Part shown: piece by piece, positions 12,432 to 43,553 of the stretch
Layout: each line of letters begins with the position of its first letter
How positions within the stretch are numbered: position 1 is the stretch's first letter
DNA from: Prasinococcaceae sp. CCMP 1430
Lineage: Eukaryota; Plantae; Prasinodermophyta
Length of the DNA stretch: 45,908 nt
Direction: 5' to 3'
Assembly: GCA_013416795.1 (NCBI GenBank)
Contig: RQSC01001001.1
Span: 1-45,908 of the forward strand
Notes under the pieces: model-generated
What the model was told of the DNA's origin: nothing
What the model saw: only the letters and a program-made list of their open reading frames with translations
The model's database searches: none
Translations under genes and position numbers: made by a program

Positions 12432-13784
12432 GCGTCGGGCTCGGGGCGGGCGGCGGAGGGCGCGGGGGCCACGACGAGCCAAACGCTCACGAGCCTCAAG
12501 ACCGGCACGCACGTCTACACCATCAAGGGCTACTCGCTGCTCGTCAACCGAGGCGTCGGCGAGGCCGTCTCGAGCGAGCAGTTCGAGGCGGGCGGCCACA
12601 GCTGGACGGTGCACTTCTATCCAGGTGAGTGCAACGCGCTGGCGCTCCTGGGCTGCGCGCCGCGAGAGCGCAGGGGCTGCCACGCGCCTCGCGGCGGCCG
12701 CTGCGTGGCCTCTGACGCGTGCGCGCGACGCTGCGCGTGGATCCTGGCGCAACCGCGCGCGCCGCATCCCGAACGCACTTCGCCTGCGCGCCTCACGCAA
12801 TTTGTCCTCCTTCGCGCGCTCCCGCGCGCAGGTGGATACAACGACGAAGGGAGCAATGCGGAGTACGTGGCGCTCTCGCTCACGCTGGCGTCGGAGGCGA
12901 CCAACCTGTGGGCGCTGTACACGTTCACGATGGTCGACCAAAGCGGCAAGGGCGAGGACAAGTCCATGGGACGCTCCGTCGCGCGCGGTCCGTGCAAGTT
13001 CGAGAGCATCAATTTCCGGCGCGGCAAGCCAAGGTTCATCAAGCGCGCTGAGCTCCAGAGCAGTGGCCTGCTGATGAACGACACTGTGGTGGTGCGCTGC
13101 GAGGTCAGCGTGGTCGTCACCGAGACGACGGTGCCTTCCGAGGGCCCGTACATCCACGTGCCGCCCGCGCGCGTCGGGGAGGATCTTGCCAAGCTCATGC
13201 ATGACGAGAGCAGCTGCGACGTGACGTTCATAGTGGGCGAGGAGCGCGAGCGCATCAGGGCACACAAGCTCATCCTCGGAGCGCGCTCGGACGTGTTTTT
13301 GACGATGTTCAACTCGCCCATGCGGCAAGGGCAGGAGGAAGGCATGGAGGTCGTGCAGGACACGCAACCCGAAGTCTTCAGAGCGCTGCTCCATTTTGTC
13401 TACACGGGTGAGCTGCGCGCGCGCGACGACACACCGGAGATGAGCCAGCACCTTTTGCGCGCGGCGGATTTCTTCAGACTCGACAGGCTGCGCCTGATGT
13501 GCGAGAGGCGGCTCTGCGAGAAGGTCGACGCCTCCAACGTGTCGACTACTCTCGTGCTGGCGGACATGCACAACGCCCAGCAGCTCAAGCAAGTGTGCCT
13601 CGACTACGCCGCGGCCAACCTGCAGGGGGTGATGTCATCGGACGGTTTCGGGACCCTCATGCAATACGACAGGTCGCTGCACCTTGAGGTGCTCGAGGCA
13701 GCCGCTAATCTCATTGAGAGCGACAGGAAGCACCTGGACGAGGATGGCAACGCGCGCGGCGCCAAGCGACGGCGCACGCGATGA
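12432..13784 (+). CDS. BPM: BTB/POZ-MATH protein (plant BPM/SPOP-like CUL3 adaptor); exons about 12432-12624 and 12832-13784; start unresolved
   Basis: MATH: HVYTIKGYS, FEAGGHSWTVHFYP|GGY, YVALSLTL, FIKRAELQSSGLLMNDTVVVRCEV. BTB: DVTFIVG, AHKLILGARSDVF, FRALLHFVYT, LLRAADFF, LRLMCE. BACK: LKQVCLDY. The intron 12625-12831 (GTGAGT..GCAG) joins the frames. Confidence 0.9.
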   Translation, partial: ASGSGRAAEGAGATTSQTLTSLKTGTHVYTIKGYSLLVNRGVGEAVSSEQFEAGGHSWTVHFYPGECNALALLGCAPRERRGCHAPRGGRCVASDACARRCAWILAQPRAPHPERTSPARLTQFVLLRALPRAGGYNDEGSNAEYVALSLTLASEATNLWALYTFTMVDQSGKGEDKSMGRSVARGPCKFESINFRRGKPRFIKRAELQSSGLLMNDTVVVRCEVSVVVTETTVPSEGPYIHVPPARVGEDLAKLMHDESSCDVTFIVGEERERIRAHKLILGARSDVFLTMFNSPMRQGQEEGMEVVQDTQPEVFRALLHFVYTGELRARDDTPEMSQHLLRAADFFRLDRLRLMCERRLCEKVDASNVSTTLVLADMHNAQQLKQVCLDYAAANLQGVMSSDGFGTLMQYDRSLHLEVLEAAANLIESDRKHLDEDGNARGAKRRRTR

Positions 13785-14435
13785 GCGCGAGGCGGAGGAA
13801 CCCAGATCCTACGCACCCCTTCTAGACGTCTTAAGCAGACCCAAGCGCAAGCTCGCCGATAGGAACGCAACAGCGCCGTAAGATTTTCGGCCACTCGTTC
13901 TTTGAACTCGTACTGCACATCCGTCTTGAGCGCTCGTGTGCGGTCGCGGGCGCTGGACCCTCCTCCGTTGTGATTCTCATACTGTGCGTGCGGGAATCTT
14001 GACTTACGGAGCGCGCGCCTGCGAGCAGCGCCTCACGCCGGCGGGAGCTTGGTAGCCTAAGGCGCTGCCACCTCGTCATGCTCCCAGGACAGGCCCTCCT
14101 GTACATTGATTGGACAAGAAATCACGCTCGAGCAGGCTCATTGCGAGGACCGGCTTGTCACCTTCGGACTGGTCCGAGGCACGCCGTCAACCCGCCCGTG
14201 CCCTCGCACGCCTGCGCGAGCATACTGATGCCGTGGAGGGGAGCGAGGAGGCGGGGGAGCGCAAATGCTTGCGATCTCTTACTGTACGTAGTACTACTGT
14301 GTTGCTTGCTTTGCGAGAGCCGCCCTCCCCGCGTCTTCAGAGGTCTGCATGCAGAGCCCACGCACCCACGCAGGCGAGCCCGCGCACGAGACGAGTTTTC
14401 GTGCGCGTGCCGATGTGCCCGCGTGCATGCGCTCT

Positions 14436-14480
14436 TTCGAGCAGCGGCCCCCATGTGTGGGTTTCGGCTACTGCTGTCAT
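14436..14480 (-). promoter_or_regulatory. Eukaryotic type II SECIS element (core and apical part; helix I extends about 10 nt each side)
   Basis: Minus strand reads ATGAC AGCAGTAGCC GAAA CCCA CACA TGGG GGCCGCTGCT CGAA. It has the AUGA/GA quartet, a 10-bp helix II with one A-C mismatch and one U-G pair, unpaired AAA 12 nt after AUGA and an apical CCCA/UGGG mini-stem. It lies about 140 nt downstream of the TAG of a gene with an in-frame TGA. Confidence 0.88.
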
Positions 14481-14619
14481 GTGCGTGCTCCGCCGGGATG
14501 AGACAGGGTCGAGAGAAGGGGAGGGTGGACTCGCGCGCAGCAGCTCACACATCCGAATGCGCATGGACACATCCGCACCCTGCGCGTGCGCACAACCGCG
14601 CTCGCAGCACTCCCGTCGC

Positions 14620-15479
14620 CTAGAGCAGCGCAGCGGCGGCGGTTGCAGCGAGCGCGCCGACCGCGGACGCGCGCACGCGAACGAGCATGCGCCCGGCGCC
14701 GCTGCTGGCTCCATCCGTGTCATCACTGCCATCATCGCCTTCGGCGCGCGCGGGCGCGTCCGATGAAGGTGGGGTCGCATCATCCTGTGCCGGCGGAGGG
14801 GGACTGGCGCTGCCAACACCAGCCAGTGCGGCCTCGATTGCCTGCACCGGCGCGTGCGCGCATGTGTGAGTACGCACGCGCGCGTGCAGGTCTGCCAACA
14901 CACGCTGGCGCTTGCGAGGGTCCGTGCGAGCGAACTCACCTCGTCGAGCAGGCCCGGCGTCGTTTCAGACCTGAATTTCGTGACGATTTCCTCGACCTCA
15001 CCGGCAGGTGTAATCACGACGAAGCGTGGGCGGCTCGATGTGAACCACGTCGAGCCCAGGTTCTCGGTGTCGCGGAGCGTGGCGATGGCGGTGTTGGCCC
15101 CGCCAGAGTATGTGGGCCATGCGTCGCAATCGCTGCTGCTCGTTGTCCAGAGGAGCGTCGCAAAGCGCACGCGGTCGCCGTACTTGGTTTTGGCGTCGCT
15201 GGCATACTCGTCGAAAAGTGGCGCTGCGGCCCTGCACGAACCTCAGTTTACGAAGCTCTTGTCAAGCACGAGCACGTTGCCGTCGCCGAGCAGGCTCTCA
15301 ATGGATGCCTCATCAGCGCCGCCCGCGGCTGCGGCGCCGTCGCACACGGAGAAGCTGCGAACGAGCACGTCCTGCGTGAGCGCGTCGCCGGCGCCGAACG
15401 GTGCCTGCGCGCGCGCGGCCGGCGCGAGCGCGAGCGCCAGGGTGGCGGCGAGCGCACTCGCCACGGTGCGGCGCCTCAT
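14620..15479 (-). CDS. Predicted secreted, GPI-anchored thioredoxin-fold (TlpA/redoxin-like) selenoprotein with a UGSC motif, 253 aa; exons 15479-14940 and 14841-14620; Sec codon TGA at 15245-15243
   Basis: Reading through the TGA gives GDGNVLVLDKSFVN-U-GSC-RAAAPLFDEYASDAKTKYGDRVRFATLL ... RPRFVVITPAGEV, which has the Trx beta1-UxxC-alpha, beta2 and cis-Pro/beta3-beta4 pattern. Signal peptide ...ALALAPAARA|Q. Intron 14939-14842 is GTGAGT..GTGCAG. The C-terminus is DGASSGAGRMLVRVRASAVGALAATAAAALL*. A SECIS lies in the 3'UTR. Confidence 0.87.
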
Positions 15480-16216: not shown

Positions 16217-18069
16217 ATGCCCTCCACCGCAGCACTGCTGCGACTGGTGGTGGTGAGCGTGGGGACCGTGCGCGCGCCAGACGCACAGAAGGCGCAGGCG
16301 GACGTGTGGCGCAACGCCGAGCAGTCGGGGGCGTTGCGTGCCGGCGGCGGGGTCGAATTGGTAGCGTTCGCGCCCTTCAATGAGAGCGTGCAGGGCCTGC
16401 AAGCGGCGAGCGCGTCCCTCAGCGAAAGCGCCGCCGAGGGTCCGCGAGGGGGAAGGGCGCTTCCCCTGATCGCAGATGACGCAAGCCCTTGCGGGAGGCC
16501 GTCGGCGGCATGTTGGAGGGCTCATGACAATCACAGCGCCGACAGCGGTCATCACGTCGGACAAGCTTTTCGCCAAAAGTCGGCGGGGTGGTGGTGCGCG
16601 CAGCAGCGCCCGCTGGCAGCTCTGAACGTGGTCAAGAGAGCCTACCCCCCGCGCACCGCTGAGAATTCTGCCGGTGTCGACTACTACCTCGTGCTGGATG
16701 ACGACACGTGCGTAGACGGTAGACGCGCCAGCGAAACGCCAGCCGCACGACTGTCCGTCCGTCAGTGGATCTTGCGAACGCCGCCATTCGATCAGCGCAG
16801 CCGCGTGACCTGCTCCACCTCACATGCTGACTCTTGCACTTCGTCTGCACATTGCATGACAGGTACGTTGACGTGCCACGATTCGCGGCCCTCCTTCCAT
16901 TGCTCCGCCACATGAACGCGGACGTGATAGGCATAGTCTTTTATGGTGTAGGATTGATGGGCGGCGCCGGCTATGTGCTCAGTGGCAAAGCACTGTCGTG
17001 CATGGACATGGCAGCATGTGCTGCGCGAGCTCGTGGCGCCCGGGAGTGGTGCTATTGGCATTCGGACTGGCAGGTCACAGAATGCGTGCGTCGTTCGGTG
17101 GGAGGGGGGTGCGGGCATGAATTGCGGTACGTGAACGCACGGACTCTTTTCAGCCAAGTGTGCAGAGACGGAGACATCGGTCAAAGTGCAGCACTAACAG
17201 GGCCCCTGCGAGTAAGCCGGCTGGACAAAGACTTCACGCGCATGTCCACGCGGTTTGGTCTTCACATCGAATCAACTGGTTTGTCCCATTTGGACCATCG
17301 GGCTCGTTCCTACGTTGGCGACGAGCCGCCTGCTCCACACGAACCACGTCGCTCAAGCACATGGGTGACGTGCCATAACGTCTCTCCGCAACGCATGCTC
17401 TCTCTGTCCGCAGCCGATATACCCAGCGGAGTGGACAGCACGTCGAGGCACGCCCTACACACAGAGCTCCTGCGGTCGCTCGCTCCGAAATTTCGCCAGG
17501 ATTGGTGCACCAAAGCCCAGGTTGGGGCTGTCCAGCATGCGGCAACCGCGGCGTGTGTGCGTGACATCGATCGCCTCGCGGAGCTCCACGCTAGTGGCGG
17601 AGCCGCGGCTGTGGCGGCAATTTTTGAGCAGCGACTCCTCCTCAAGCCCGCTGGGCAGCCTGCTCTGCAGCTATTCAATGAGCTCATAGCTCGACGTGTT
17701 GCTCGCCTACCTGGCGCTCCCGAAGATGTTCTTCGAAGAGCGAGCGAGATGCCAATCTTTGCTGAGATGAAAGACTTACAAGACAGCACTGCCGTTCAAC
17801 GCAACAAGGAGCTGTGTGAGAAGCGTGTCCGACGAGGCATGTTTGGGCGCTACGGGTCAAGCCTGAAATGGTTTCGCAACACCACGCTCGCACTCGATGA
17901 TCCCCTCGTGTCCAGCGTTCTCACACGGCCGCTGTGCTCTATCGACGGCTTCGTGCAGGTCGTGCGCGAGATCGAGCCACAGGCGACCCCGGACGCCTGC
18001 GGCTTGGCGTCTGTGCACGCGCCTTCCTCGCAGCAGGCTCCTCTACTCACACCAACATGCCCCGTCTGA
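16217..18069 (+). CDS. Fringe-like/GT31 beta-1,3-glycosyltransferase, about 565 aa; exons 16217-16707, 16863-18069
   Basis: Splicing the intron 16708-16862 rebuilds DYYLVLDDDT-YVDVPRFAALL (DxD motif). Also LMGGAGYVLS and WHSDWQVTEC, which are typical of GT31/Fringe proteins. Confidence 0.75.
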
Positions 18070-39607: not shown

Positions 39608-42600
39608 CTACCGACCCTCGAGCGTGGACGCGTCCTTCAGCTGGAGCTTGGGCACGACGTTCATCGACGTGAGCTCCTGAAAGAGCAGTTTGCACGCGTA
39701 CGGCAGCTTCAGGCTCGCAACGCCCTCCTTCGAGCGGCAGCTCGCGCACACGCCCGCCTTGAGGTCGTGGCTGAAGTAGCCGAGCATGCCACACTTGGTG
39801 CACACGTGCGCTTCGAATTCGTCGCTCGAGATCATGAGGCGCTCAAGGATCATGTGAGACGCGCCGTACGCGACAAGGCTGCGCGGGCGCGAGCGCAGCG
39901 AGCGCCGATGGCGCCAGCGCGCGTGTCAGCAGCCATAGTAGGAGTCAACGCCGGGGCGCGGGTGTGCACTGGGATCTCGCCCGGTGAAAGGCCACCTCGG
40001 GCAACGGTACTGTGCCAGGGTGGTGAGTAGTGGGCTGCTCGTTCGTCGCGCGTACTTCGTGCCGCGCAACGCACCAATCGCGTTCCATCTCTCCCAGGCG
40101 TAGGCCGCCGTCCCTGCTGCGGCCCTCGGTTGGCTGGCGCGTCAACACCACGCGCGGGCCGCGCGCGCGCGCGTGCATCTTGTCGAGCACCATGTGCTTG
40201 AGCTTCTGGTAGTATACGGGACCCATGAATATGTACGCAGGTATGGGCTCACCGGTGATGCCACTGGTCAGCACGTCCTTGCCCTCGTAGTTGAAGCCGC
40301 GGTCGATGAGTGTCTGCGTCATCGCTTCGATCGGGTCCCCGCCGAAGGCCGTGCCATCGCGGAAGTGCCCATCGAGCACGCCCGCCTTGCCACCGAGGAG
40401 CTCGATCATCTTGGCGACTGTCATGCGACTGGGGAATCCGTGAGGGTTCATGATGAGGTCGGGCGAGATGCCGCGGGTGCTGAAGGGCAAGTCCTCCTGG
40501 CGTACAATGGTGCCCACCACGCCCTTCTGACCGTGGCGCGAGCTGAACTTGTCGCCGATCTCGGGCCTGCGCGTGTGTCGCACGAGGGCCTTAATCATCA
40601 TGTAGTTCTCATCGTTAGCTGTGACGAGGACCTTGTCAACGACAGCTGACTCGGTGCTGCTCGCGTCCATGCTCGGCCCCTTGTACACGCTCGGCGCGCG
40701 GCGGTAGTGATTCGGGTTGTTGACGTCGAGCGGCTCGGGTGCCAGGTCACGCGTGTTCCGCGGTGACATCTTGTTGACGAACATCTGCCCGTTAGCGATG
40801 GGCTCGCCCACGCCCGCGACGCCCTCCTCATCGAGCGCTCGCTCGCGCATGGGCGGCCTGTCTTTGCCGGCCTCTTTGTTAGGCGGCAGGATCTTATCAC
40901 TCTCGCGGTTGCCGTACTTCTTGATGCTGCTGGCGTAGCGCCGCATGACCGTGCAACGCCCGAAGCCGCGATCGAGAGATGCCTTGCACATGACGATGGC
41001 GTCCTCGATGTCGTAGCCCGAGTACGACATGACCGCAACGATGGCGTTCTGGCCCGCCCCGAGCTTGTCGAACCCGATCAGCCCAATCGTCTTGGTCTGC
41101 ACCAGCGGCCGCATGGGGTACACGAGCAAGTACAGAAGCGTGTCCATGCGCGTCTGCTGGTTGTACGCAACATTGCCCATGGCCTGCTTCCCCATCGCGC
41201 ACTGATACGTATTTCTAGGAGACTGGTTGTGGTGCGGGTATGGGATCAGCCCAGCGACGACGCCCAAGATGGTGAAGGGCTCGATCTCGAGGTGCGTCGT
41301 CTCGGCGATGCAGTCGTGCGGATAGAGCGCAACCAGGCTGTCGTTCTCCTCGTTGACGTCAAGGTACTCAACCTGCCCATAGTGTAGGAAGTCGTCGAAG
41401 GTGCGCAGGCCATCCTTCAGGTCGGCCAGATCCTCGTCAGTGACGCGCGGCACTCCGTTGTCGCAGATGATGAGCGGCCTGCACACGCGCCCACCGTCGG
41501 TGGCAATGTACACCGCGCGCTGCGCACTGTGCATGAAGATGGAGACGAACTCGCCAAGCCGCCCGGCGCGACGAAGGGCGCGCATCGACTCCATGAACGC
41601 CAGCGGCCGCCGATGCCTACCGAGGATCGAGCCGTTGAGAAAGACTAGCGCGGATCCCTCGCGATGCAACTCCTCGCCCCCTACCACGCTGAGGTCCTCG
41701 ACGCCGAGCGAAAGGCAGAGCGACGCGACCGGCCGCCCGTCGTCGTCGGTGGTCACGTGTGTCATGAGCGCAAGATTTTTGACGAGCCCACACGCCTCGC
41801 CCTCCGGCGTGTCTGAGGGGCACAGCATGCCCCATTGCGAGGGCTGCAGCGCGCGCGGCCCCGACACCTTTCGCGTCTTTTCGAACTGCGAAGTGATTCG
41901 CGTCATCATTCCAAGGGCGGCGATGAACGACAGGCGCGACAGCACCTGCGTGACGCCCTTGCGCTCCATGCGGAAGCGCTTGATGGTCCAATTGCCGCTC
42001 GAGATGGCGTGCTCCAGCCCGTTGGTGATGGTGTCGGGGCGGATGCATTTGAGCACGTCGAAGGGTGCTGCGCGGTTCTGCTTGCTCAGCGTGATGTCCG
42101 CCTGGCGCTTGAGGTCGCTGTTGAGGCGCTTGAACAGGTCCTCGAATAGCAGCGCAAGCAGTTGGCCGCCCAGCTCGAGGCGCTTGTTGCCGTAGTAGTC
42201 CTTGTCGTCAACTTGCGAGGGGTCGCGCACGGCCGCAAGCATGCGGCGTATCATGACGCCCATGTATACAGCCTTCTGCTTGAAGTCAAACTTGTGCACA
42301 GGCACGTGCGCGAGCACGACCGAGGCAAGCACGTCACGTGCCTCGTCAGCGCGGTTGCGCTTGACCTTCACCCAGTTCTGCCGGCTCGACTTGGCCTTGC
42401 TGCCCAGCCAGTCGAGCGCCTGGTTCTGCGTGAAGACGCCAAGCCGCGAGCACTCGCCCACACTCTGTGCAAGCGCCTCGGCCACCTCTGCCTCCGATCC
42501 AACGAGCTGAATGCACTCCTGATCGCTCTCGATGCCCATCGCCTTAAGCACCACCATGGCGGGCACATCATCCGTGAACGTGTTGTGCCGCAGCAGCACC

Positions 42601-43400
42601 TTGCCAGCCTTGTACACCATCGTGGTCTTAGACTTGCGCTCATGCGTCGACGACGTCACCGATGCGTTCATGTTGCCCTGTGGGTCCACGTCGATGATGA
42701 TGCGGTTCTTGCTCAGCTGCTCCTGGATGAGGATGACCTTCTCTACGCCCTTGACAACGAAGTAGCCGCCGGGGTCCAGGGGGCACTCGCCAAGCTCGGC
42801 CAGCGCCTTCTCGTCCTTTCCTGAGAGCACGCAGCGATTGCACCGCAGCATGAGCGGCATGCGGCCGATGAGCACTGCGCCGACGCCCTTCTTCTCCCCC
42901 TTCCTCTCAACGAGCTCCTTGCCACGCGTGTACTCCACGTCGACAGTTATCGGCGCGCTGTACGTCATGTCGCGCAGGCGGCACTCGTGCGGCGTGATGT
43001 TTTTGCGCACGAAGTCCTCGCTCACCACGGGCTGGCCGACGTAGATGTTCGTGTACTTGAGGTAGAACGAGGGATCGCTGTCGCAGCGCACAATCCGATT
43101 CGCCTTGGCCTGCACGATCTTCTTGATCTCAGTCTCGAGGAAGTAGTTGAAGGAGTCGATGTGCTGCTTCACGAGGCCGCGCACCTGCAGGAAGGCAGGC
43201 AGCAGCTCCTCTTTGTCCTTGAGCGACGATATAGGCCTCGTGAGCTTCGCCGGCTCCGCGCGCAGCAGCGCGAGCGCCTCGTCCGCCCCGCCCGCGGCCG
43301 CTGGCGTCTGCGCGCTCGGGCCGCCCGGCATGTCTGCGGGGTCCTCCTTCTTCACCACCGTCTCCTTGCCCTTGCGCGGGGCGCGCCGCGCCGACGGCAT
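39608..43400 (-). CDS. RPC2: RNA polymerase III second-largest subunit, about 1198 aa; exons 43400-40075, 39878-39608
   Basis: [122 protein letters not shown]|CL and the terminal zinc ribbon. The residues match RPC2 rather than RPB2. Confidence 0.97.
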
Positions 43401-43553
43401 GGCTGCAGCCCTCACTCCTCAACCTGACTGAGCTCACCTCACCTCACCTCAGCCACCCACTCGCCCACCCGCCCACGACCTTCTGTCGCGTCGGCCGCCT
43501 CCGCCGGGGCCGCCGGCTGGCCGCCGGCGGCAGAGAGGGCGGCGGCGGTGGTG

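Follow-up and report, generated by a model that had tools for sequence, protein, structure and literature searches.

[quoted passage not shown]

We report that a hairpin on the minus strand of the window (the whole 45,908-nt stretch of DNA that was analysed), at positions 14425–14488, is very probably a functional type II eukaryotic SECIS element. It would serve the insertion of Sec at an in-frame UGA of the gene in whose 3' UTR it lies. The features of the gene and of the hairpin are listed in Table 1.

Table 1. Coordinates of the TGA-containing gene and of the parts of its 3' UTR hairpin, in transcript order
Feature	Position	Strand	Basis
Coding exon 1 (180 codons with the UGA counted), N-terminus resembling a signal peptide	14940–15479	-	exon end confirmed by spliced contig L002
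In-frame TGA, codon 79, FVN-U-GSC, predicted to be read as Sec	15243–15245	-	translation; conservation
Intron, 98 nt, GTGAGT...GCAG	14842–14939	-	exactly absent from L002, present in L007
Coding exon 2, ending with TAG 14621–14619	14619–14841	-	P0001 is the spliced product
3' UTR, minimum extent	14305–14618	-	L002 covers 15409 to 14305
Putative SECIS element, type II, whole	14425–14488	-	fold, pattern scan, Rfam SECIS_1
Helix I 5' arm, GCACGC	14488–14483	-	sequence and fold
AC, unpaired, 5' of the core	14482–14481	-	sequence
5' core AUGA, expected SBP2-binding quartet side	14477–14480	-	sequence; aligned to SECIS_1 consensus AUGA
C directly 3' of AUGA	14476	-	sequence
Helix II 5' arm, AGCAGUAGCC	14466–14475	-	pairs with 14449–14440
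G between helix II 5' arm and AAA	14465	-	sequence
Apical-bulge AAA, unpaired	14462–14464	-	starts 12 nt after AUGA
Mini-stem (helix III), CCCA / loop CACA / UGGG, 4 bp	14450–14461	-	fold
Helix II 3' arm, GGCCGCUGCU	14440–14449	-	pairs with 14475–14466
3' core C-GA: C 14439, GA 14438–14437	14437–14439	-	sequence; aligned to UGA of consensus CUGAU
AAGA between helix II side and helix I 3' arm	14436–14433	-	sequence
Helix I 3' arm: GCG, CA bulge, UGC	14432–14425	-	sequence and fold

An earlier note on this DNA had paired the hairpin by hand, and sequence and RNAfold agreed with its layout base for base, including the spacing of the AAA from the AUGA and the 4-bp mini-stem. RNAfold, the check that the note had proposed, returned the SECIS form as the minimum-free-energy structure (-23.2 kcal/mol for 71 nt), with the helices unchanged when the element was folded within 96 nt. 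In this structure an internal loop of 7/7 nt, which contains the AUGA and the GA, is closed below by helix I, and helix II has the ten positions claimed, nine of them standard or wobble pairs and one an A x C. In the core, AUGAC (14480–14476) lies opposite CGAA (14439–14436). Compared with the SECISearch3 consensus core of UGAN/KGAW (PMC3753652), UGAN and GAW are present and the K position is a C. The unusual C next to the quartet had been pointed out before, and C14439 does face C14476. The GA at 14438–14437, opposite the GA of the AUGA, would be expected to form tandem sheared G.A pairs with it.

The element thus shares with eukaryotic type II SECIS elements the site in the 3' UTR, the quartet within an AUGA/GA internal loop, a helix II of approximately 10 bp, the AAA 12 nt from the core, helix I and the apical mini-stem (helix III). 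It differs from them in that the AAA bulge lacks unpaired bases on its 3' side, as well as in its 3' core and in the covariance-model score described below. Type II SECIS elements with an apical mini-stem, and large selenoproteomes, are known from Ostreococcus and Chlamydomonas (Lobanov et al. 2007, PMC2375036). In nearly all Ostreococcus elements the quartet is preceded by a G and the mini-stem is long (PMC2375036), whereas the present element has an A before the quartet and a mini-stem of 4 bp (3 bp in the second species described below), and is nearer to the general eukaryotic form.

Both strands of the window (92 kb of strand) were scanned for an ATGA followed 9–13 nt later by AA, with a GA opposite the core and eight or more helix pairs, and 14425–14488 was the sole match. 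A hairpin of this kind might still be a coincidence of GC-rich DNA, in which case the TGA would be a true stop, giving a 78-residue product or marking a decaying gene. First-order Markov simulations gave a chance expectation of 0.27 such sites per window, and the stability of the fold is not unusual for its composition (z = -0.69 against shuffled sequences; the DNA is 68% GC). However, the sole match fell inside the 834-nt downstream stretch in which a SECIS element has to lie, where the same simulations gave approximately 0.0025 sites.

The Rfam SECIS_1 model (RF00031) aligned end to end (model positions 1–64) with 14487–14426 at 16.7 bits, which was the sole SECIS_1 match near the selenoprotein gene. 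Calculated over the full set of 4227 families, the E-value was 5 with a 1-kb query and 0.61 with a 121-nt query; linear rescaling gave approximately 5e-4 for SECIS_1 alone on the 3' intergenic strand and approximately 0.055 over the window as a whole. The match falls short of the curated Rfam gathering score of 35, which counts in favour of a chance hairpin, and at the gathering threshold Rfam found nothing in the 45.9-kb window. Detection is reported to be hardest for non-metazoan SECIS elements, and those of the Ostreococcus type were excluded from the SECISearch3 consensus model (PMC3753652). Of the earlier description of the hairpin as a 'canonical' type II SECIS, the type II form stood, and the word canonical was slightly generous, given a 3' core of CGAA rather than KGAW and a score of 16.7 rather than at least 35. 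Weak overlapping matches to IRES_L-myc and to miRNA families, seen in Rfam's E-value mode, were rejected as noise from GC-rich palindromes.

The gene starts with the ATG at 15479. With the 101 residues that follow the TGA as query, its product was recovered from the representative library in a spliced (P0001) and an unspliced (P0002) version, and the database copies of both begin after the UGA. P0001 is encoded by L002, a 1007-nt Logan contig of run ERR1719217, from which exactly the 98-nt intron is missing and which spans the TGA, the TAG and the full hairpin in one molecule. The intron is retained in L007, a scaffold from a Tara metagenome that belongs to the window's species. Runs ERR1719164 and ERR1719224, with numbers on either side of ERR1719217, are Tara Oceans metatranscriptomes (PMC9983209). 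Since L002 is without the intron, L007 has it and the neighbouring runs are metatranscriptomic, we take L002 to be derived from mRNA, which places the hairpin inside the mRNA. The location in the 3' UTR of the TGA gene, as proposed in the earlier note, was thus borne out by the spliced contig. Polyadenylation between 14620 and 14480, which the note had named as the finding that would speak against it, is contradicted by the continuation of L002 to 14305. In the spliced mRNA the UGA is 665 nt upstream of the AUGA. The hairpin begins 131 nt downstream of the stop codon, and the AUGA lies 139 nt downstream of it. As a separate observation, half of the intron (14842–14891, minus strand) is a near-perfect GC-rich palindrome of approximately 50 nt with weak miRNA-family Rfam matches.

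The extent of the transcript also bears on the suggestion that the functional SECIS element lies elsewhere, further downstream or in an unusual form, with the hairpin at 14425–14488 being a non-functional look-alike. Algal SECIS elements may carry lineage-specific features that evade standard models (PMC3753652, PMC2375036), and the suggestion draws on this. We consider it most improbable, as relaxed scans of the whole 3' intergenic stretch, allowing N[U/G]GA cores and bulges, found no site besides 14425–14488, and there is little room for another element with L002 ending at 14305 and the convergent BTB/MATH gene at 13784. The latter gene (12609–13784, plus strand) encodes a MATH-BTB-BACK (SPOP-like) protein and is 834–835 nt from the selenoprotein stop. 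One extra match to the relaxed pattern (UGGA core, 1-nt bulge) at 16514–16561 on the plus strand is without supporting context and is probably due to chance.

An orthologue approximately 61% identical to the window protein was found in a second species, a sister of the window's species and hereafter species B, which is known from contigs L001, L003–L006 and L008 of several Tara and ENA metagenomes. The orthologue has a TGA at the equivalent site, within DKSFVN-U-GSCRAAAP, with coding similarity on both flanks. In Pyramimonas parkeae, the 267-residue protein P0007 reads YVN-C-AGC, with Cys92 at the Sec position. The occurrence of Sec and Cys at one position of a UxxC/CxxC motif is a classic selenoprotein signature. 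Species B and P. parkeae were the only sources of homologues among 1.84 billion representative sequences. Homologue searches with P0001 and P0007 gave self or near-identical matches only, and peptide-pattern scans of JGI metagenomes found no relative. A DNA pattern across the Sec codon, searched in the JGI data, found only another species B contig, which ends just after the TGA. Three long repeat proteins that the representative search also returned (P0003, P0004 and P0006) were rejected as spurious matches (Calx-beta and integrase repeats).

The intron positions differ between the two genes. The 98-nt intron of the window gene follows ...LLDE, and that of species B is 330 nt long (L001 2322–2651) and follows ...SGGK; species B has no intron at the window's intron site. 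This difference suggests that an intron was recently gained or lost in the lineage, and it shows that the two genes are independent genomic copies rather than the result of contamination.

Downstream of the stop codon of species B there is one SECIS-like candidate, at L001 3131–3195, 45–110 nt past the stop. Its layout and its place in the UTR match those of the window element: helix I has 6 bp, CAC-A precedes the core, the AAA is 12 nt from the core, the mini-stem has 3 bp, and there is a GA on the 3' side with 4 nt back to helix I. From the window to species B, helix II changes from A-U to G.U, from A-U to G-C, from U.G to C-G and from A x C to A-U, and its 3' arm has an extra AA bulge in species B. 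Pairing is preserved by one double-compensatory change (A-U to G-C) and three one-sided changes, including the repair of the A x C, in a comparison of two species only. With the core relaxed to N[U/G]GA, an equally well-paired match was expected in 0.0005–0.004 of simulated UTRs. In place of the near-invariant AUGA, the core of the species B hairpin is AGGA in each of five independent contigs (L001, L003, L004, L005 and L006). At the outer quartet pair, where U faces A in the window, species B has G facing U. Rfam SECIS_1 gave no match to the species B element. In a local alignment of the two UTRs the best segment was the SECIS 5' arm, with a score that is non-significant alone (reached in 76 of 300 shuffles). 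Another AUGA further along the species B UTR (L001 ~3229) was rejected, as it does not adopt a SECIS fold (z +1.46) and fails the pattern scan. Covariation in an orthologous UTR, a check proposed in the earlier note, was found, with the geometry and pairing-preserving changes of species B in its favour, and the AGGA core and the small number of species against it.

Coding conservation on both sides of the TGA in species B, the Cys in the homologue and the matching hairpin in species B all argue against a chance hairpin and a true stop, a reading that we regard as highly improbable. The conserved TGA, the Cys homologue and the matching hairpin also support, at the level of sequence, the earlier claim that the TGA is recoded rather than the stop of a pseudogene.

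Conservation of the hairpin could also reflect a different function. Tandem sheared G.A pairs between a canonical and a non-canonical stem are shared with the kink-turns bound by the L7Ae family and are a generic kink-turn feature, and the species B core AGGA is off the SECIS consensus. The hairpin might then be an L7Ae-type kink-turn for mRNA stability or localization, or a structure for 3'-end processing, with the UGA being recoded in some other way. However, the AAA at 12 nt in both species, the geometry of helix I and the internal loop, and the mini-stem are specific to SECIS elements; generic kink-turns have neither an AAA bulge at a fixed distance nor an upstream in-frame UGA. Moreover, no other SECIS candidate was found downstream of either gene, though both genes need one. 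We judge a different role to be very unlikely, and a SECIS element remains the preferred reading of the window hairpin.

A G in place of the U of the AUGA has a parallel outside the algae. Novoselov and co-workers reportedly described, in 2007, a GGGA-type SECIS in Toxoplasma and Neospora that is said to have been shown to work in Toxoplasma. Species B likewise has G for U with the G.A tandem kept, but it reads AGGA and is a green alga, not an apicomplexan; the window element has the standard AUGA. On balance we lean slightly towards the view that the AGGA hairpin of species B is also a functional SECIS, and that the two elements would serve a new, lineage-restricted UxxC family with Sec in the Prasinoderma-like algae and Cys in Pyramimonas.

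Within the species of the window, differences among the window sequence, L002 and L007 occur at 14584, 14580, 14557 and 14499, as well as at several positions below 14320. The sole strain change inside the element is in L007 (~1020), which has one A fewer in the A-run 14437–14435, so that the loop after the GA shortens from 4 to 3 nt; the core, the helices and the AAA are without substitution. This intraspecific variation agrees with constraint on the element, in numbers too small for a test.

As for the host, the RNA polymerase III second-largest subunit encoded in the window (39948–43415, minus strand, intron-free) shares 80% identity with a cluster that includes Prasinoderma singulare, 71% with Prasinococcus capsulatus and approximately 70% with streptophyte and chlorophyte algae. 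By this sequence comparison the host is a marine green alga of the Prasinoderma type (Prasinodermophyta). The genome of P. coloniale, with a GC content of 69.8%, is reported to be rich in selenoproteins (PMC7455551), which indicates that the lineage uses Sec and speaks indirectly for the SECIS reading. No genes for the Sec machinery (tRNA-Sec, SBP2, eEFSec, SPS and SecS) were found in the 45.9-kb window, and a tRNA search there found none.

The product of the gene is predicted to be a small secreted redox protein with a U-G-S-C motif. Pfam gave no match for either of the two protein pieces or for the Cys homologue. An AlphaFold2 model of the Cys homologue, built from a five-row alignment, had a pLDDT of 39, too poor for a fold search; its order of strand, CxxC, helix and strands is suggestive of a thioredoxin-like fold. 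The best PDB profile match was likewise a thioredoxin, with a non-significant E-value of 0.41. The C-termini of the window protein, P0005 and P0007 consist of a linker rich in Pro, Ser and Asp and, after it, a short hydrophobic tail of Ala and Leu, an arrangement that fits a GPI-anchor signal or a tail anchor. Judged by family listing, the gene is not obviously among the families of the algal selenoproteome surveys PMC6627142 and PMC7539508. Having no Pfam family and almost no homologues, it seems to be an undescribed selenoprotein gene.

By analogy with known eukaryotic SECIS elements, we infer SBP2-type binding and Sec insertion for 14425–14488. The AUGA/GA internal loop would fold into a kink-turn-like quartet that contains tandem sheared G.A pairs and to which an SBP2-family SECIS-binding protein would bind, and helix II would set the unpaired AAA at a fixed distance from the quartet. 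The resulting complex would bring eEFSec and Sec-tRNA(Sec) to ribosomes paused at the UGA far upstream in the same mRNA. This UGA (15245–15243) would then be read as Sec to give the redox motif, with termination at the TAG.

The SECIS element itself is of an ordinary kind and will not surprise a specialist; what is less ordinary is the orphan-like gene that it serves and the AGGA core of its counterpart in species B. With the hairpin, an apparent stop becomes firm evidence of a selenoprotein that gene callers split or truncate. Profile-based selenoproteome surveys would miss the gene, because its homologues are confined to species B and P. parkeae. The analysis provides an annotated gene model, with Sec codon, intron, stop and SECIS, for the deep-branching green lineage Prasinodermophyta, and contributes a SECIS element whose 3' core carries C where the consensus has K. 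The AGGA core of species B offers a natural variant for mapping the tolerance of SBP2-type proteins. If the AGGA element is functional, the U of the core would be dispensable in a green-lineage alga, and the outer quartet pair would have changed from U.A to G.U within one genus.
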